DNA from: Vitrella brassicaformis CCMP3155
Taxonomy: Eukaryota > Protista > Chromerida
NCBI GenBank assembly: GCA_001179505.1
Contig: CDMY01000399.1
Location: 1-64,000 of the forward strand
Length of the DNA stretch: 64,000 nt
Direction: 5' to 3'
Part shown: positions 20,282 to 32,200 of the stretch, piece by piece
Position numbering within the stretch: the stretch's first letter is position 1
How the letters are laid out: each line of letters opens with the position of its first letter
Program-made: the position numbers and the translations under genes
The notes under the pieces: generated by a model
Told to the model about the DNA's origin: nothing
Database searches by the model: none
The model's input: only the letters and a program-made list of their open reading frames with translations

Positions 20282-20994
20282 CCACAGACCCAAAGAGAGA
20301 GAAAGGGCAAGCAGCAGTGTCGACTGGGAGGCTTGTCAGTGCATCCCCCTCACAGTTGCGCCCATGTTTGCACGTGCGGTCATCATGCAAACACGGGAAC
20401 TTGCACCCGCACGTCGCCGCCCACTCAGCCTTCGTCACGTCCAACCTAATTGATCGATGGATGGATGAAGGACACAGCACATACAAAGAACACACAAAGG
20501 AGATGGACGGCAGAGAAGCTTGTCTGTGTCTGACTGTGTGTGACTGACCATCCTTCGAAGGACACGCGAGGTTCGCAGAGGCCGTGCTTCTGATACTCCT
20601 CGTCTGCCTGGCAGAAGTAGTCGCCGTTCTCGTCCTCGACCATCGTCCAATTCATCGGACACGGCGCGTGAGTGTCCCGACCGCCCGGGCACTCGGCATC
20701 GACCTGAGCCTTCCTGTTGATCTCTTCAATGTCCTCGTTCGCACCCTCAACGACATTCGACTCCAGTCGACGAATTGTCAACGGGGTGAGAGCCGCCGCC
20801 GACAGACGCGTCTTTGCGGCCGCATCTGTCGGCTCTCCGGACGACAAGAGGCCGAGAACTTGAGTGTCCTCGGCTGCCTCGCCGGCCGTGTCTTGAGAAG
20901 ACGATGAAGACACAGACAGCAGTCTGAGAGAGGATGAGTGAGCGAAGCCGAGGAGGGATGCGCAGACACAGACAAGAGAGAGGAACGACCGCAT
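18674..20994 (-). CDS. CPW-WPC domain secreted/surface protein (apicomplexan-chromerid family), with an apparent 1-nt frameshift near 19401
   Basis: Signal peptide MRSFLSLVCVCASLLGFA. Repeated CPxxW...C...C...K..W...C...F/WPC units (CPMNW, CPAGW, CPDQW, ECASPWPC). The 3' end is approximate. Confidence 0.85.
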
Positions 20995-21089
20995 CGTGGA
21001 TCTGCTTGCGTCGATTTGGGACACGCCGCGATTACTTTTGGCAATTTCGTTTACTTTTCATTCGTAAACACTCACGGGTCGATGAAAAA

Positions 21090-22593: not shown

Positions 22594-24310
22594 CACCATC
22601 GCATGGCTGATCTACTCTTCAATCACCTCGCGTAAGTGTCCCCCTGCACGTTGACAGCATGCTGGGAGACACTTGCGTGACGGCGTCGAAGGGCACATCA
22701 TCCACAGAGATGCAGTACATAACGACACCATACGGGACACATCGATCGCGACGAAAGCAGGTGACGGTCGAGAGCCGATCGGCATCGTCTCCTCTGCCCT
22801 GCGTGCCGGTGCTGGCGGCCCACTCAGGCTGGCAATGCCAAGCGAGCCGACAACACCAACGCAGAAGTGAGAGAGGCACAATGGTCTGATCGGGACTCAC
22901 ACCGGCGGTCAACCTCCCCACTGTAGCTCGGCTGTCATGACGCCTCTCTCCCCCTCTCCTTCATCCCCTCCCTCCCTCTAGTCTGCCTTGGTAACGCGTA
23001 GGTGAAAAATCCCATGCAATTGTGCTGCATTGGTTGTACGTGGGTGTATGTGTGCGTGAGGTGGGGGCGTGTGTGCGCCGGGATGACAAATAGCTGTATG
23101 AACCGTGGATGTGAATCGTTGGTTGAGTCAGTCGGTCATCAGTGAGTGAGTGTAGTCAGTCAAGTACACTTGCACCAGACAGACAGACAGTCAGACAGAC
23201 AGACCTACCCACGTCCTAAGAGTAAGAAGAGTACGGCCCATCACCCTCTCTCTCTCTCCCTCTCTCTCTCTGTCAGGCACACAGACAGACGCACACACAG
23301 TCAGCCAGACAGACAGGCAGGCAGGCAGGCAGGCACAGAGAGAGGGGAAGGTAGGATTCACTGCGCAAGATGGTAGGAGAGGAGTGTAGTAGAGGGTGGA
23401 TGGATGGATCGAGGGGGAGAGAGGAAGGACCCCAGGCAGCCAGCAACACCACATAATCTACATCTCACCAACAGCACCACCAGACGCACACCCAGATCGA
23501 CATCACGTACACACACGTATGCAGGAGCGTTAGGTATGGACTGGACCACCACAAAACCTCCACCTATCCTATCTATCCATCCGTATATCGCACTTCGATC
23601 AAGCAGGCAGGCAGGTACTGTAGCGCTGACTGACTGAGGAAAGGCATCTGGTCAATGGCGACCACTGCCCACAATTCCCTCCTCATCCCTTACCCTAACC
23701 AGCATGACAACACATCACATCACATCACATCACATCACATGAGCATTAGGCAAGTAAGTTTTCCCTCCCTCGCTCTCTCCCATGTCTCTCGTCTGTCCGT
23801 TCTCTTTCAGAGAAGCTCCCTCTCTCTCTCTCTGCCCCTCTCTCTCTGCCCCTCTCTGTTCTGTAAACATCGATTCATGTCATGTATTGTATGGGCCACA
23901 ACAGCCGAGAAAAAGAAGGCACGCACACCACACACATGAACGGCACGACACACGAAGAGGCGATGCGAAGAAGAAACACAGCAGCTCCCCACAACTGAGG
24001 GCAAAAAAGGGTGGCCAACGACGATCGCATAAATCAGCCATACCATACATCCATAGATAGAGATAGAGATTGAGATAGTTACCGCACCACGCTCACCATC
24101 CCTACCCTCCCGCCCAGCCCCATGCCACCGCCCGATCCCGTCCGTATTCACAATCCAGCAAGGGAGAAAAATCACATCTGAACACACATACATTGTGCTC
24201 TCGCATCATCCACCATGCACCCATCCACCCACGCATTCACCGAGCATCTCTCGCCCCTCCCTCCCTCCCTCCATCCAGCCATCCAGCCATCCATGTGTGT
24301 GTAGCTAATG

Positions 24311-27300
24311 TCACTCCTGGTATGAGATCAGCGCCGCTAGGTTCGCCAGCTGCGGCGTCACCAGCTGAGCCATCTCGATGATCGACCTGGCCACACACAC
24401 ACACACGCACACACACACACAGACACAGACACACGCAGCAGACAGACAGACCATGGGCATCACAAAACACGAGAACCGATGCCAATGCAGCACCGTGCAC
24501 CATTCCACTCACCTAGGGTTGCCCTTGAGCCGCTCCATGATGGGGTGCTGCATCAGCCGGTCCATCGCCTCGTCCCTCCCCAGCACGCCACCCTCCCCTC
24601 CACCACTGCCCGATGACCCGCCGCGGCCACTCACATCCCGCACGCACAGCGGCCGGCCCACCCGTCGCAGGAAAAGGTCCGCCGACGCCGCCCTGTCCAG
24701 GGGCATCAGCTCCTGGGACACCACTTTGACCTTGCCCTCGCTTATCAGCTGAATGGGCTTTCTGCTCGTGTCGTCGGATGGCCCATCAGTGTTGTTGGGG
24801 AGGGTGGAGGCCTTGTGGTGTGGGAGAGGGGGGTAGTTGGGTCGGGTGGAGAGGGAGCAGGTTCGGGCGGAGACGACGATGTGCAGGCCCTCGAGGCCCT
24901 CGGTCATGTGTGGGTGGAGGTCGTGGTTGAGGACGCTGTGCACGTCGCCCAGGAGCAGCTGCGTGAGCACCGCCTGGAGCCCGCCGGCCTTCAGGAAATC
25001 GTCCACCCCATCCAACACCAGCAGGCAACGACCTGCCAACACCACACACACAGAGAGGACACAGACACGTGTTGCCGGAGACAACCTTCCTTTCCTCTCT
25101 CTGTCTCACCTTTTCGCAGCCGCTCGGTGAGCACACGGACCGTCTCGCGCCACCGCCATCCCTCCAGATCGACGTTGCTCTCGCCTTCATCGCTCACGAA
25201 GCTGCCGCCCTCCACAGTGTGTTCAGACGCAGCCCTATCACGCGCCGACGATGCGTGCTTGATGCGACGATGGCCAGGCGGGAACTGAGGCACCTCCAGC
25301 ACTGATGAACCGAACACAGAGAGAGGGAGATGCCATGTGAGACGTGTCTGTGTGTCTGTGTGTCTGTGTGGTGTGTGGTTGCTGTCCCTTGTGCGCACCT
25401 GTTGCTAGAAGGTTGTGTATAATGTTGGTGGTCTCCTTGACCACTCTATACCCGCATGACGACCCCTCCACGCTCAGCGGCAGGTTGCTCAACGGCGCCA
25501 GGCGCAGGAAAATGACGCCCCCGGGGAAGATCTCCTCCCCCCGCAACGCGCAGTACCGACTCACCTCCTCACACACAGCCGTCTTGCCCACCCCCTCCTC
25601 GCCATGCAGCAGCACCAGCCGCCTCCGGTCCAGCAGCTGCAAAACCACCCACACGTCCAAGGTGCGGCCCACGAAATCCTCTGGGGGCTGGGGGAGGTGC
25701 CGCTTGACGAAGCATGACACCCTGCGAGCTGGCTTCCGCCTTTCTGTCCCAGTGACGGAGGGGGCTGGCTCGGTGCTGACGGATCGCTGGATGCCGAACA
25801 GGCGCGACATGAGCGACGGTTGCTGGGCTGATGTGGGTGTGGGGGCAGGGGTAGGGAGTGTGGTTGCTGGGATGGAGTGAGCTTGGTCGTCGGGCGTGCT
25901 GCCAAAGCCGATCCACCCGAACACGATGGGCAGCTGGCGAATGACCTGCAGACACATGCATGCATCAGACACACTCATCCATGCCTCTCTCTCTCTCTCT
26001 CCCTCTCCGTCTCTCACCGGGCATCTGCTCTGCTGCCATCTCTGCAGCAGCGGGCTCGAAGCAAGGTGCGGCAGCACAATGCTGGGATGGCCACTTGGCA
26101 GCGCCATCAGAGACGGCGGCAGTGACAGCGACAGACCACCGCTGCCACCGGGCGAGCACGGCACCGACGAGCACACCGGTCCCGGCCCCCCTGGTGACTC
26201 GCCTGACGTCATACGTGGAGGTTTGCTCCGCTCGCACAGCCAGGTGTTGTTGTTGTGTGTGGAGTGCTGTGATTGGCCGGAGGGGGAGGGCGGCGAGAGG
26301 GATGGCGGGCGTGGGTCGTCGCGCGGGCGTGGCTTGCTGTTGCTGCTGCTTGCCGATGGACACAGCACCTGAGACACACACACACACACACACACACATG
26401 CAGAGGAACAGAGAGACGCCCTTACTCTAATCTGACCTGTGAGTGGTTGCCGTCATGTGGGAGCAGCACGAAGCTCTCTGCGTCTGTGTTGTAGTTGTGC
26501 GGCGCCGACTGCACGGCCGCCCTGCCCAGCATGTAGGCCACGCCCACGTCCTTTCCGGACGCAAGGGCCAGGTAGAAACCCGCCGTGAACTGACGAGCCG
26601 CCTGGTCCTGCGCAAAGCAGAGAGAATGCAATGCAGCCACATGGATGATGCACCCAGCCCAGAAGGATGTGTGTGGGGGAGAGGCGGAGAGGGGTTGACC
26701 TACCTGTACGGTGTTGCTGACACAGATGACGTGTGGGATGCCGGCGGACGCGATGGCCACACCGATCTCATAAGAATGACAACAGTTCAAAAACACCAAC
26801 CTGTCGGCCGACACACAGACAGACACACGTCAGCCATGAGCAAAGCAAACACATACCCCCCCTCTCTCTCTGTGTGTGTAGGTGCTCACTGCACATCTGA
26901 CGAGCAGCCCTCAGCGTTATCCGTATCGTCGACCGACGAGGCACCGCTGTACACGGCCTCCAGCAGAGTCCGGAAGAAAGCAGGCGTCGCCACGTGCGCC
27001 GACCCCCTGACAAACCAAACCCCGCCACGCAGAGACACAAGCGACAGACAGAGATTGCACGTGTGCATCGAGTGCGTCATGGCCCTTGTATGGGGACAGT
27101 ACCTGCCGTCTTCGAAGGCGAGGCCACCCTCAAGCCCGTGTGCGGACAGGTGCAGCAGCTGCCCGCCGCCGAGCGTCAGCAAGGACCGCAGCGCAGCCGT
27201 GGTCGCAACACTTGCCTGAGCGATCCCATCCACACAACCAACACACGAGACACACACACAGAATGAATGAATGGGCAACCCGCTGTGAGACGTGCTGTGC

Positions 27301-28903
27301 GTCTGGGCGTGTACCTCGATAGCGACGTCGCTCCTGCCTGCGGTCTGGAAGGCGTGTTCGAGAGTGCGGAGCTCCTCGTACCAGTCGAGCGGGGGAAGCG
27401 GGCACAGCTGACCGTCCGGGCCGCACATCGTCAGCGGCGAGGCAAAGAGAAACTTCACACTCATCCTGTCACACACACACACACACACACACATACAGAG
27501 ATGACAGAACCATCCAAACATGTCTTTGTCCATCTTCCGGCGGCCAGCTTACGCGTCGTCCGCTGCCTCGTTCTCGCTCGCGTCATCCTCCTCCTCCCAC
27601 TCGTCATGGTCATGCTCATCGCCAGCATCGACCGACGGCCGGTACACCTCCGTCTCGAAGCTGCCGTGCGTCCCATCCGAGAGAAATGAGTCAAACAGGC
27701 CGCCCAGGAAGGGCGCGTTGCGCGATGATGAGCCGCTCGACGCCTCGTCGGGGTGGCATGGCGATGGCGATGATGACGACCGGCGAGTGCCGCCGCAGCC
27801 GGCGAAGTGCAGCAGCTGGTCGATCTCTGAGGGCTCTGCTGTGTGCTGGGGGGTGGGTGTGGCCACTGATGGGGGGGGCGGCATGGGGCTGAACGAGGAA
27901 GGGTGCCTGTGAGAGGTGAAAACGGCCGGCAGGGATGTGTAGGTAGTTGTCTGTGTGTGTGTGTGTGTGTGTGTGTACTGGTAGGTACCATCCTGTGTCG
28001 TCTTCGGAAAGAGTGCGGTCGACGTCTGGCTCGCTCGGCACATACGATGTGGACAAATTGCCCACCACAGTCAAACCAGACCTGACAACAGCAACAACAA
28101 CAGCAACACACACACTCACACACACAGATGCACACAAGACGCCACACGTCCTTTCTCACCAGCTGGACTCTTCGCTGGCGGTTCTGAACCTTACGGCAGC
28201 CCTGCCGGCCTCATACCCATCCCTCTCGCCATGGTGATCCGACGGGCAGTAGGGAGTGGTCATGACCTCACTCGCATACTCGCGCTGCTCGTCCACCACC
28301 GGCAAATGAGACGACACCGACCGCTCACGACAGCTGTCGTGATGAGGATGGTGCTGGTGCTGGTGGTGGTCATCGCTTCTCGGCGACGAGAAGCGGCGGA
28401 AGGACAGCCACCTCGACAGAGAGAACGGCCGGCTCTCGTCAGCTTCGCCGCCATTGGCATTGGCGTCAGTGGCATCGTCGTGAGGCACACTTGCTGAGCG
28501 AGAAAGGGTGGGCGAGTGAGGGCTGCTGGGCGATGGGGGTGACTGTGGCGCTGAGGGGATCATGCGCTGGTGCGAGGGGTCGGTAGATGGGCTGTACAGG
28601 GCTTCCCCGCCAAGCAGGTCACTCAACATCTGACACGAGACACACACACAGAAAGGCGTGAGTGAGAGGTGCAACCGCGACAGGACGTCTCACGACCAGT
28701 GCAGGCAGCCTCAGTGAGACCATCACCCACAGCTACCCCGCCCCCCTCTCCTCCCCACCCCGTCCCACCTGCAGGCAGGAAGACGTCCGCTGCGACACGG
28801 GTGCGTCCCTCCTGAGCATCGAGGTGCATGGCGGGTCAGGGGTAGTCGCGCGGCAGCTGGAGGACGACCGCTCCATCGAGGGCGTCTTGCGGGCCAGACT
28901 CAT
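24311..28903 (-). CDS. CHAT (caspase-like) protease - STAND/NB-ARC-type NTPase fusion (NLR-like)
   Basis: CHAT: KFLFASPL, LDWYEE, LLHLSAHG (His), LVFLNCCHS (Cys), DQAARQFTAGFYLAL. NTPase: PEDFVGR, LVLLHGEEGVGKT (Walker A), CLLVLDGVD (Walker B), IVVSAR, LMPLDRAASADLF, LKGNPR (GxP). Both ends are approximate. Confidence 0.85.
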
Positions 28904-29270
28904 GGTGCAGGGGTGGTCAGAGGGGGTGTTCACGAAGGGGAGGGTGTGTGCGTCATTGACACGGCATCTTGGCAAAGATCTGTCGATAAAGCCGTGGCAC
29001 GTGCATGGCCCTGGCAGACCCTGCACATCCTGGGCCTCCTGGAAGGGCGGCAACTCAACTTATGCTTCGATCGAAGCGCTTCCTCCGTTTAACCCTTCTT
29101 TGCTCTCTAACCCGAAAGCGATAGCATCCTTTCACCTCTTTTGGGACTTCCAGCTCACCGAATGCTGCTCCGAGAAGCAGAGCCCGGTGAACTCTCTCAA
29201 TCACATCACTCATGTCTGACACCCGAGATCACCCCGCTGACAATCGCATCTTCAGCGAGATACCGTTGAA

Positions 29271-32200
29271 ATGAGTCAGCAGCCAGAGGACCGGGCGCAG
29301 GAAGACGAGCTGTACAGGGAGCTTGCCCAGAGTGTGCGTAACCATGCGGCAGTGAGGGAAGGGGAAGGGGAAGGGGACGATGCCCATGGCGGTGCGAGTC
29401 CGGGGATGAATGGGGCGGGGGAGGGGAGGGAGGCCGACGACAAGAAGGTCACCATCACCCGTAAGCACCATGCAGGGAGGGGGATAGAGGCACGAACACA
29501 TCGAAATTCCCTTTTCCCGGCTCTCTGTGTGTATGTGTGTCTGTGCGTGTGTGCGTGTGTGTCTGGTGTGTGGCAGAGAACGATGTGTGTCTGGCCGTGC
29601 CCGACACGGCGAGTGCCCCCCCTGACGGCCACCCGGCCGGCGACTCGCCTGTCCAGGCTGAGATCTCAGGGTGAGCAGCGCACCCACTCACACACGAACT
29701 GTGTAGTTGTTGCCTGATCCTGATCCGTGGATCCATCGCATCGGTCCGTGTGTGTGTATGTCTGTCATCAGTGACGTGACCGCGCTGCTGAACGACTTTC
29801 ACGACCTGCCGAGCAAGAAGCAGTTCAGGCCGCTCCAGCACTTTCCTAAGAGATGGGACGATTTCAAAGCCGTAGGTGAGTGGATTGGTGGGCTAACACG
29901 AGAGCCCAACACACCACACGCACGCACAAAGGATGTTTGTTTCTTGTGTTTGCACAGGTCTGTGGTGTTGGCGCGAGTATGTGCCTATCGGTGGCTGGCT
30001 GCCGACGTACAACTGGCGGAAGGACGGCGTCGGCGACCTCGTCGCGGGGATCACCACAGCATGCTTTCTCGTCCCTCAGGTGACCATCCATCCATCCATC
30101 CATCCATCGTGAAAGCGGCTGTGTGTCTATCGCTCTGTGTGTGTGTGTGTGTATCGATCAGGGCATGTCCTACGCATTGGTTGCCAACCTGGAGCCCGTG
30201 TACGGCCTCTACTCAGCCATGGTCTCCACCATCGTCTACGCACTACTCGGCAGCTCACGGTCAGTCAGTCTCCCACTGCCCCCTCCCCTCGTCTCCTTCT
30301 CTTTGCACACAATCAATGAGTGCGTTTCTGTGCGCACTTTCTTTCGGTGCATTGCAGGCAGCTTGCTGTGGGTCCCGTAGCCATCGTGTCGATCCTGACT
30401 GCAGAGGCCATCTCTGAGCTGGGCATCGACCCCAAGCTGTCTGACGGCAATGAGAATCCCCTCTACACATCAAGGGCCATTGCGCTCGCCTTCGTGGTAG
30501 GTGAGCAGTGAGTGAGCACACAGACAGCTGTACGGCCCTGCCCTGCACTCTTGTGTTGTGCCGCGTGTGTCGTGTCAGGTTGGCATCTACTCGCTGGGCC
30601 TGGGTCTGTTTCGCCTGGGGTTCCTGGTCAACTTCCTGGGCCACCCGGTGGCCAGCGGCTTCACCTCTGCGGGCGCCATCATCATCGGCCTCTCACAGTT
30701 GAAGCACGTTGTCGGATACCAGGTGAGAACCATCTCTGCAGCCAGCAGCCGTGTGTATGTGTGTATGTATGTGTGTCGTCAATTGTCACCAACCAGGTGG
30801 ACAAGGGCACGATCCAGAAGAGCTTTGAGTCGATCATTGAGGGGGCCGAGGACTTCAGCTGGCAGTCGTTCCTGATGGGGGTGCTGGTCATATTTGTCCT
30901 GTGGCTGTTCAAACGCAACTTCTTTGTCAAACACCCCAAAGTATGCCAAAGCCAAAGCCAAACAGCACACAGAGATGCCCGTCTATGCAGAGAGAGAGAG
31001 AGAGACCCCTTTTGGATCATTGTGTCCTTTCCTCAGTTCCAGTGGATCCGTCGGCTGCCCTCGCAGCTGCTGGTGATCATCTTCGCCACACTCATCACCT
31101 GGGCGGCCGGCTTCCAGAACAAGCCAGCAAAAATAAAGGTACACTGACACGCCCAACCACCCACCCACGCAGATATACGCCTTCCCGCATTATCTGTGTG
31201 GGTGTGTTTGCAACAGATCATCGCAGCGGTACCCGACGGCATCCCGAAGGCGCAAGCGCCAGACATCGACAGCAACGTGTTCGCGGACCTGGCTGTGGCC
31301 GGCGGCACCATCACTCTCATCGGTATGTATCAGAAGAAGACATAGCGGCAAAGAGTCCGTTTGTTGCTCTATGGTGTGGGGTGTGTGTGCGTGTGTGTGT
31401 GTTCGTAGGGTTTATGGAGTCGATAGCAGTGGCGGAGATCTACGCGACCAAGAACGACTACTCGCTCATCCCAAACCAAGAGCTCATCGCCCTGGGCGCC
31501 TGCAACCTCCTCGGCTCAATGTTCTCGTGCTACCCCACTGCAGGTGACACCATCCACCCACCACACAGATCGAGACACCGAAAGATATTGTCACGCCTCT
31601 CTCTCTGTGTGTGTGTGTGTGTGTGTGTGGTATCAGGCGGCTTTGGCCGCACGGCCGTGAATGCGGCAGCGGGTGCCAAGACGCCCCTGGCGTCGCTGAT
31701 AACGGGGCTGGTCCTGGCGCTGGTGCTGGCCTTCCTCACGTCGCTCTTCTACTACCTGCCAAAACCCTCTCTCGGCGCCATTGTGATATTCGCCGTCGTC
31801 GGGCTCTTCGACTGGCAGGAAATGGTGGGTGTGGTCGGCAGGTTCACTCACGGCGATGGGCGTGATGGACGGATGGATGGATGGGTTGTGTGTGTCAGGT
31901 GCATCTGTGGCATGTCAACAAGCGCGACTTCTGCACGCTGATGGCGACGTTCATCTTGACGCTGACCCTGGGAGTGGAGACGGGCATCCTCATCGGCATC
32001 GGCATTTCCATCATACTCATCATCCACCAGTCGGCATTCCCATACACAGCTGTCCTGGGTACTTACTTGGACACGCACGCACCAGCAACACTTGTGTGTC
32101 AGCACATGTGTGGATGGATGGATGGCTGCAGGTCGTGTGCACAAACTGGGTGCCCCGTCTGAAGCCCCTGAAGCGGCGGAGGACCAGGTGTACCCTTTCT

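Follow-up and report, generated by a model that had tools for sequence, protein, structure and literature searches.

Gene structure and transcription

The window analyzed here is a 64,000-nt stretch of the chromerid Vitrella brassicaformis CCMP3155 (positions 1 to 64,000 of contig CDMY01000399.1, assembly GCA_001179505.1); its DNA is eukaryotic and GC-rich, and its short introns abound in CA/GT repeats. Its minus strand carries a gene that encodes a predicted CHAT-type protease domain followed by a STAND/NACHT-like P-loop NTPase, which we refer to as the CHAT-NACHT gene (Table 1). The exons were derived from the sequence; all introns between them (13/13) have GT..AG boundaries, and once spliced the gene reads as a single frame, open from position 29038 up to the TGA at 24311-24313. 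Across all 1128 residues, its translation is identical to the database protein P0001 (CEM10008.1, UniProt A0A0G4FBM1, from V. brassicaformis CCMP3155). The sole name of this protein is "AAA+ ATPase domain-containing protein"; the entry was already public, with CHAT and AAA_16 domains precomputed in the database.

A preliminary description of this locus had proposed that CHAT exons are spliced in frame to P-loop exons in a photosynthetic alveolate. The GT..AG introns, the identity of the translation with P0001, and the junctions in transcript contigs confirm the splicing, and the protein record confirms the source organism. Every motif on which that description relied was found on the minus strand, namely LHLSAHG, FLNCCHS, EDFVGR, GEEGVGKT, LLVLDGVDD, IVVSAR, MPLDRAASADLF, and GNP. 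The interval that it assigned to the gene (24311-27470) is correct at one end only: its start coincides with the stop codon, whereas its end lies 5 nt upstream of the first CHAT exon, so that the first four coding exons (approximately 350 aa, up to the ATG at 28903) were left out.

Eight public runs contain this stretch, and the transcript contigs of four of them were compared with the window over positions 23400-29399. The transcript evidence consists of assembled contigs rather than single reads, and two junctions flanked by repeats were masked. The contigs of all four runs skip exactly the predicted introns, with eight junctions listed, each reading CT..AC on the plus strand. Record 16 of run X6 (3534 nt) begins upstream of 28769, covers the CHAT exons and then the P-loop exons, and ends at approximately 24300, and records 18 and 19 of run X7 span the same ground in two pieces. 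When the CHAT and NTPase exons were tested for separate transcripts, both were found in one contig (X6 record 16); with the two domains in a single transcript, the term "CHAT-STAND fusion" used in the preliminary description holds. Judging from record length and bin depth, the last 86 nt or so of X6 record 16 are co-linear with the window through the TGA and approximately 10 nt beyond it. Since the contig end and the bin depth fit this co-linear reading, the stop codon is used and not spliced out. A further exon past the TGA, suggested by a possible GT at 24312, was ruled out by the transcript depth, the annotation, and the end points of homologs. The CHAT-NACHT gene is expressed and intact.

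Two further features of the gene and its transcripts were recorded. Many introns (between 24387 and 28768) contain a microsatellite, (GT)n or (CA)n, which often abuts the acceptor site, and several of these were masked as repeats in the transcript alignment. At 25586-25852 and 24543-24593, contigs in several runs fit only these stretches and are unlike the window sequence on both flanks; the flanking letters at the breaks are the same across runs. Possible causes include a paralog with a near-identical P-loop segment, an alternative donor (GAG/GTGAGT) near 25586, and assembly-graph chimeras in the Gly-rich region.

Table 1. The CHAT-NACHT gene and the domains and motifs of its predicted product (positions are those of the window; A3 is the alignment of the NTPase that includes bacterial sequences).
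Feature	Position	Strand	Remarks
Complete coding sequence, 1128 aa	24311..28903	-	14 exons; CEM10008.1 / A0A0G4FBM1
Exons 1-5	28769-29038, 28160-28629, 27989-28081, 27553-27906, 27315-27465	-	5' end of exon 1 uncertain; ATG at 28903
Exons 6-10	27103-27215, 26890-27006, 26704-26800, 26437-26607, 26018-26368	-	
Exons 11-14	25399-25945, 25110-25301, 24513-25032, 24311-24386	-	
N-terminal region, approximately 350 aa, without detectable domain	27465..28903	-	Ser/Pro/Gly/Thr-rich (40%), acidic run directly before the protease
CHAT-type caspase-fold protease domain (predicted), aa 352-565	26443..27464	-	Five short exons
Predicted catalytic His427 (LHLSAHG, aa 422-428)	Codon 27138..27140	-	Aligns with the His of HFIGHG in SAVED-CHAT
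Predicted catalytic Cys485 (FLNCCHS, aa 481-487)	Codon 26779..26781	-	Aligns with the Cys of LNACCT in SAVED-CHAT
Protease-NTPase linker, approximately 200 aa	25694..26442	-	Ser/Pro/Gly/Thr-rich (48%)
STAND/NACHT-like P-loop NTPase, aa 769-1128, NBD and HD1 only	24314..25693	-	Three Vitrella-specific disordered insertions
EDFVGR	25664-25681	-	Invariant in A3 (F, G, and R of FVGR), also across its bacterial members
Walker A, GEEGVGKT, aa 799-806	25580..25603	-	G..G.GK columns invariant in A3
Walker B, LLVLDGVDD, aa 934-942, NACHT hhhhDGhD type	24998..25024	-	Asp938 (D174 of A3) invariant
Sensor-1 strand, IVVSAR, aa 982-987	24863..24880	-	Arg (R223 of A3) invariant
MPLDRAASADLF	24671-24706	-	L.PL-type motif; its Leu invariant in A3
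GxP motif, KGNPRS, aa 1100-1105	24383..24526	-	Split by the last intron, 24387-24512
Stop codon TGA	24311..24313	-	25 residues past the GxP proline; annotated protein ends here

CHAT protease domain

The whole protein matches the Pfam family CHAT (PF12770) at residues 381-534 with an E-value of 3e-8 and a score of 33.9 bits (cut-off, 24), in agreement with the earlier assignment of this domain. No CHAT match was obtained with Pfam for the raw open reading frame (ORF) pieces, because single exons are too short and only the full spliced protein gives a positive result; searches of PDB sequences with single exons yielded nothing or only P-loop noise. The AlphaFold model of residues 345-590, built with 18 aligned sequences, has a predicted local distance difference test score (pLDDT) of 84.9 and a predicted template modeling score (pTM) of 0.80, and displays the strand-helix alternation of the caspase fold. 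In a Foldseek search with this model, the top matches were five chains of the activated SAVED-CHAT filament (PDB 8TL0; E-values of 5e-11 to 3e-10, template modeling scores of 0.62-0.64, 21-22% identity), followed by gingipain R, caspases 4, 1, and 11, Csx29, DdvA, and separase. The profile of aligned CHAT domains matched 8TL0 with an E-value of 7e-26, and the domain fell next to short bacterial CHAT domains of 170-200 aa in a language-model atlas (score of 0.96).

SAVED-CHAT from Haliangium ochraceum is thus the best match to the Vitrella protease in both structure and profile, and both residues of its catalytic dyad have aligned counterparts there. The H-G and A-C-H-S motifs of the family fall on residues H355 and C402 of the 8TL0 chain in the profile alignment, which equal H375 and C422 in the numbering of the paper, the deposited chain being offset by 20. 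The H375A/C422A double mutant of SAVED-CHAT is inactive (PDB 8TL0). Both catalytic residues named in the preliminary description are present, His427 and Cys485 being aligned with this proven dyad. Cys485 is the only invariant column of the CHAT alignment A2, and His427 is kept in every sequence covering its position. Judged by these alignments and models, the CHAT domain is a clan CD caspase-fold cysteine protease with a catalytically competent-looking dyad.

STAND-derived NTPase module

The C-terminal part of the protein was described from the start as a P-loop domain with the STAND motif series, and FVGR, Walker A, the Walker B Asp, the sensor-1 Arg, and GxP are indeed all present. In alignment A1, Pro1103 of GNP is an invariant position that lines up with GCLPLAI in the oomycete protein PITG_03457; the MAFFT alignment A3, which includes bacterial sequences, puts the GxP motif elsewhere than A1 does. 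We take GNP, by its sequence, to be a genuine GxP motif.

The only NTPase family in Pfam whose cut-off was passed by P0001 is AAA_16 (33.4 bits; cut-off, 32.6). NACHT, NB-ARC, nSTAND3, and nSTAND6 match only around the P-loop and below threshold, and NCBIfam gave only a sub-threshold P-loop match, to FxSxx_TPR. Relatives of P0001 exceed the Pfam thresholds for NACHT (P0003 and P0009) and NPHP3_N (P0006, P0009, and P0010). Profile matches spanning most of the NTPase were found for Roq1, Apaf-1, NRC1, and NLRP5, STANDs make up most of the Swiss-Prot fold matches (Rv0894, GutR, many plant R proteins, and alr2800), and the language-model atlas assigned the module to NB-ARC/NACHT clusters with a score of 0.97. 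We conclude that the NTPase is a STAND-derived module of the NACHT clade.

In a Foldseek search of PDB, the NTPase model matched best a wheat resistosome, Apaf-1, and ZAR1, with AAA+ proteins close behind. VIA-align scored NRC resistosomes highest, with Z-scores of 12.0-12.3, against 11.2 for Apaf-1 and 10.7-11.5 for Rpt, p97, and ORC/Cdc6. An alpha/beta domain with a helical lid is the minimal AAA+ unit, and the proteasomal Rpt, p97, and ORC/Cdc6 score near the NLRs (at most 11.5 vs. 12.3). On this basis, the NBD and HD1 might form a classical AAA+ ring, that is, a constitutive hexamer that remodels substrates or feeds them to the attached protease, as Lon or FtsH does. We regard such a ring as very unlikely, given that the sequence profiles favor STAND families (NACHT, NPHP3_N, nSTAND1, and AAA_16) over classical AAA, that the STAND-typical FVGR and GxP are invariant, and that the protease and the ATPase are separated by a long flexible linker, unlike the packed rings of Lon and FtsH.

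The whole NTPase model aligns to residues 103-346 of Apaf-1 and 152-379 of NRC4, corresponding to the NBD and HD1. The winged-helix domain (WHD), HD2, and repeats that could follow HD1 are absent from the STAND-derived module, as only 25 residues follow the GxP proline, and no repeat family of the LRR, TPR, WD40, or ANK type was found on P0001 with Pfam. The designation "NLR-like", which implies an effector, a NOD, and a sensor, is therefore only partly supported: the protein ends where HD1 ends, with neither a WHD nor a repeat sensor, and this trait is conserved in its family.

Outside of the two domains, Pfam recognized no family in residues 1-380 of P0001, Roc and COR included, and the language-model atlas provided no neighbor for the N-terminal region (best score of 0.47). 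This region has no similarity to the N-termini of the dinoflagellate relatives described below. The Vitrella linker of approximately 200 aa has no counterpart in the relatives, whose linkers are 40-70 aa long. No targeting or membrane domain is recognizable in the 1128-aa protein.

Dinoflagellate relatives and the conserved end point

A search of 1.8 billion representative sequences with the Walker B-to-GxP exon as the query returned only P0001 itself, the unrelated repeat protein P0002, and P0003. The latter, encoded on a marine contig and likewise arranged as CHAT-NACHT, is the only genuine relative obtained by this search. When P0003 was used as the query, proteins of Polarella glacialis and Durusdinium trenchii, an MMETSP transcript, and several marine contigs were retrieved. 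Word-indexed homolog searches were dominated by low-complexity words; the 8000 candidates sharing the most words were scored, and known relatives were missed. An additional contig, L004, came from a metagenome scan with a narrowed family alignment.

The dinoflagellate CHAT-NACHT proteins (L004, P. glacialis CAE8684674.1, D. trenchii EP00913_P026096, and marine contigs) share with the Vitrella protein the core of CHAT, linker, NBD, and HD1, as well as the catalytic His and Cys, and the motifs HRPL..RD and VTPQL are common to all family members. Their identity to P0001 is 24-37%, the NTPase of Vitrella is distinguished by its large insertions, and the catalytic His is followed by Cys or Ala in the dinoflagellate proteins but by Gly in Vitrella. 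All of these relatives end 10-20 residues past the aligned end of P0001, at real stop codons inside their contigs; the end of the dinoflagellate proteins lies 10-20 residues beyond their VTPQL motif, and this end point is shared by at least eight distinct dinoflagellate relatives. Since the relatives stop at the equivalent point, the C-terminal shortening is a trait of the family and not damage. By sequence comparison, the Vitrella protein is a member of a small family that occurs, in the taxa sampled, in chromerids and dinoflagellates.

The dinoflagellate members differ upstream of the core. Contig L004 (ERZ1738535 NODE-1816, 4703 nt) contains a single ORF of 1520 aa (L004:60-4619) for a complete member of the family, in which a long region without a Pfam match is followed by Roc (39.6 bits), COR-A (50 bits), CHAT (35.7 bits), the NACHT-like NTPase, and the stop codon. 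In contig L002, COR-A (L002:2-343) precedes the same CHAT-NTPase core. Vitrella has approximately 350 aa without a detectable domain instead of these modules. In the gene model P0039 (P. glacialis CAE8639015.1), a pseudouridine synthase fragment and PPR repeats are joined to the CHAT-NACHT core. This model probably fuses neighboring genes and was not used, the transcript-like contigs of close relatives having COR at that position. No description of a chromerid or dinoflagellate CHAT-NACHT protein or of a ROCO-CHAT protein was found in the literature searched. Two variants appear to be undescribed: the conserved chromerid and dinoflagellate form that lacks WHD and sensor, and the dinoflagellate version fused to Roc-COR.

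Oomycete and prokaryotic relatives

The affinities of P0001 differ between its domains. The CHAT domain is closest to PITG_03457 of the oomycete Phytophthora infestans (34% identity over 215 aa, E-value of 4e-28, vs. 3e-6 for a dinoflagellate protein), whereas the NTPase is closest to dinoflagellate proteins (E-values of 9e-13 and 4e-9, vs. 0.001 for PITG_03457). The protein is thus of mixed affinity in these comparisons, oomycete-like in CHAT and dinoflagellate-like in the NTPase. The per-domain trees place the eukaryotic sequences apart from the sampled bacterial ones (support of 98/97 for CHAT and 81/79 for the NTPase), and P0001 joins the group of MMETSP and dinoflagellate sequences, with a support of 82/80 in the NTPase tree. 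We count the separate grouping of the eukaryotic sequences as suggestive of a shared history of the CHAT and NTPase domains; the trees are small and thinly sampled, with several long branches, and no conclusion on origin is drawn from them.

PITG_03457 (SAM-CHAT-NACHT-TPR, 1651 aa) has the same order of CHAT and STAND NTPase as the Vitrella protein, which lacks the N-terminal SAM domain, the long region after HD1, and the TPR repeats at 1296-1390 of the oomycete protein. A tblastn search of the window with the post-NTPase region of the Phytophthora protein (aa 601-1651, TPR repeats included) gave no match, and no second gene copy, paralog, or TPR partner was found inside the window. The parts missing relative to PITG_03457 might mean that the Vitrella gene descends from a full SAM-CHAT-NACHT-TPR gene and is now decaying, transcribed but devoid of regulated function. 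The long low-complexity insertions in the NTPase and the 200-aa linker, both absent from relatives, as well as the long branch of P0001 in the NTPase tree, agree with decay. However, the frame is open over 14 exons with canonical splice sites, all catalytic and nucleotide-binding residues are intact, the eight or more dinoflagellate relatives stop at the same point, and spliced transcripts occur in four runs, which together make a remnant highly improbable.

The architecture is not unique to Vitrella: bacteria and fungi have known CHAT-STAND fusions, and oomycetes contain uncharacterized ones. In bacterial CHAT-STAND-TPR proteins, such as P0014 of Micromonospora sp. (Trypsin_2-CHAT-AAA_16-TPR), an N-terminal CHAT effector is followed by a STAND NTPase with FVGR and Walker motifs, as in Vitrella; fungal CHAT-bearing NLRs have this layout as well (PMC12881547). 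The bacterial and fungal CHAT-STANDs possess WHD/HD2 and TPR, WD40, or ANK sensors, which the Vitrella protein does not. Moreover, many bacterial CHAT-STANDs and fungal CHAT NLRs adjoin their own substrate gene, whereas the Vitrella gene does not: no obvious substrate gene is present nearby, as had been noted before.

Proposed mechanism and biological role

We favor, with a probability of roughly 60%, the interpretation that this intact and expressed gene encodes a competent CHAT protease tethered by a flexible linker to a STAND-derived NTPase composed of NBD and HD1, from which nucleotide-driven self-association and activation by proximity are inferred. Binding of ATP to the P-loop module would drive self-association, which would concentrate the CHAT domains and thereby switch on limited proteolysis of a substrate. 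Apoptosome-type platforms are known to activate a protease by proximity. The proposal is made by analogy with the SAVED-CHAT filaments and the Apaf-1/caspase-9 apoptosome, which work in this manner. In SAVED-CHAT, ligand-driven oligomerization activates the CHAT protease (PDB 8TL0); this bacterial, CRISPR/CBASS-linked protein oligomerizes via a SAVED domain that binds cA3, whereas the Vitrella protein carries a P-loop NTPase. The Apaf-1/caspase-9 system consists of a STAND platform that activates a caspase-fold protease, and the Vitrella NTPase model aligns with Apaf-1. Apaf-1 itself has a WHD, HD2, and a WD40 sensor and recruits the protease via CARD; in Vitrella, the protease is fused and nothing follows HD1. 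Without a WHD, the usual ADP-locked closed state could not exist. Lacking both the winged-helix lock and the repeat sensor, the protein would have to be controlled by other means, the candidates being the N-terminal region (Roc-COR in dinoflagellates), a partner protein, or the level of expression.

Several observations weigh against the favored interpretation. The Pfam CHAT match covers only profile positions 108-258 of 289, leaving the N-terminal third unmatched. In the NTPase, the second acidic residue of Walker B is not conserved across the family, and P0001 scores below the Pfam thresholds for NACHT (15-19 bits) and NB-ARC. The NTPase model has an overall pLDDT of 62.9; its core is confident, while the three Vitrella-specific insertions are disordered. 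With Z-scores of 12.3 vs. 11.5, structure alone does not separate STAND from AAA+. Furthermore, the contact between NBD and WHD is a main interface in solved STAND oligomers, with HD1 outside (PMC13581612). An NLR-type assembly may thus not be available to a protein lacking the WHD, and any assembly of the Vitrella protein would have to differ; this is the main difficulty for the proposal.

A more specific proposal is that the protein is a true immune or programmed-death receptor, i.e., an effector-NLR that senses a pathogen or stress and kills through cleavage by CHAT of a pore-former or a similar executioner. Several systems provide precedents: CHAT-bearing NLRs and TPR proteins control gasdermins in fungi (PMC12881547), bacterial Apaf-1 orthologs carry N-terminally fused caspase-like proteases (PMC13581612), SAVED-CHAT acts in phage defense (PDB 8TL0), and a sister protein with a TPR sensor exists in Phytophthora. 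Nonetheless, the Vitrella protein lacks both a sensor domain and the winged-helix lock, its gene is single-copy within the window, and the searches run showed neither a lineage-specific expansion nor variable repeats. PADLOC gave no match, and no obvious substrate gene is found nearby. The conservation of the family since before the split of dinoflagellates and chromerids resembles that of core signaling more than that of an arms-race receptor. While an immune or cell-death role of the Vitrella protein is plausible by analogy, we consider the full receptor scenario unlikely.

The favored interpretation of a competent, tethered protease can be extended to the whole family. In this extension, chromerids and dinoflagellates would share an undescribed class of caspase-like protease switches, in which a minimal STAND drives CHAT; in dinoflagellates, with Roc-COR upstream, two nucleotide switches would gate one protease. 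We put this forward tentatively, as an idea that is more doubtful than the favored interpretation itself.

Regulated cell death is physiologically well documented in dinoflagellates and their relatives, and few of its molecular components are known. CHAT-STAND fusions are recognized death and defense modules in bacteria and fungi, and here a related fusion is expressed in a chromerid and belongs to a conserved chromerid-dinoflagellate family. This family has lost two parts thought to restrain NLRs, the winged-helix lock and the repeat sensor, which raises the question of how a STAND-tethered protease is controlled without them. His427, Cys485, and Lys805 are defined as residues for mutation, and the dinoflagellate Roc-COR-CHAT-NACHT proteins provide a second testable lead. 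If the CHAT switch proved to be an executioner or trigger of regulated algal death, it would open bloom collapse and coral symbiosis breakdown to study at the molecular level.

Neighboring features of the window

Downstream of the CHAT-NACHT gene, transcript depth in run X6 reaches 162 at 23400-23699 and 70 at 23860-24244, compared with 43 for the gene itself. The segment 23400-24244 contains no convincing ORF and represents either a long 3' untranslated region with uneven coverage or a separate transcript. Farther along, a 192-aa ORF on the minus strand (20446-21024), which may be an exon of a secreted protein, starts like a signal peptide and continues with an acidic, Cys-rich body. On the other side, upstream of approximately 29200, ORFs lie on the plus strand; between approximately 30500 and 33000, plus-strand ORF fragments with long hydrophobic stretches and a STAS-like tail resemble, from a reading of their sequence, an anion transporter of the SulP/SLC26 type. 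This SulP-like gene and the CHAT-NACHT gene are transcribed in divergent directions.

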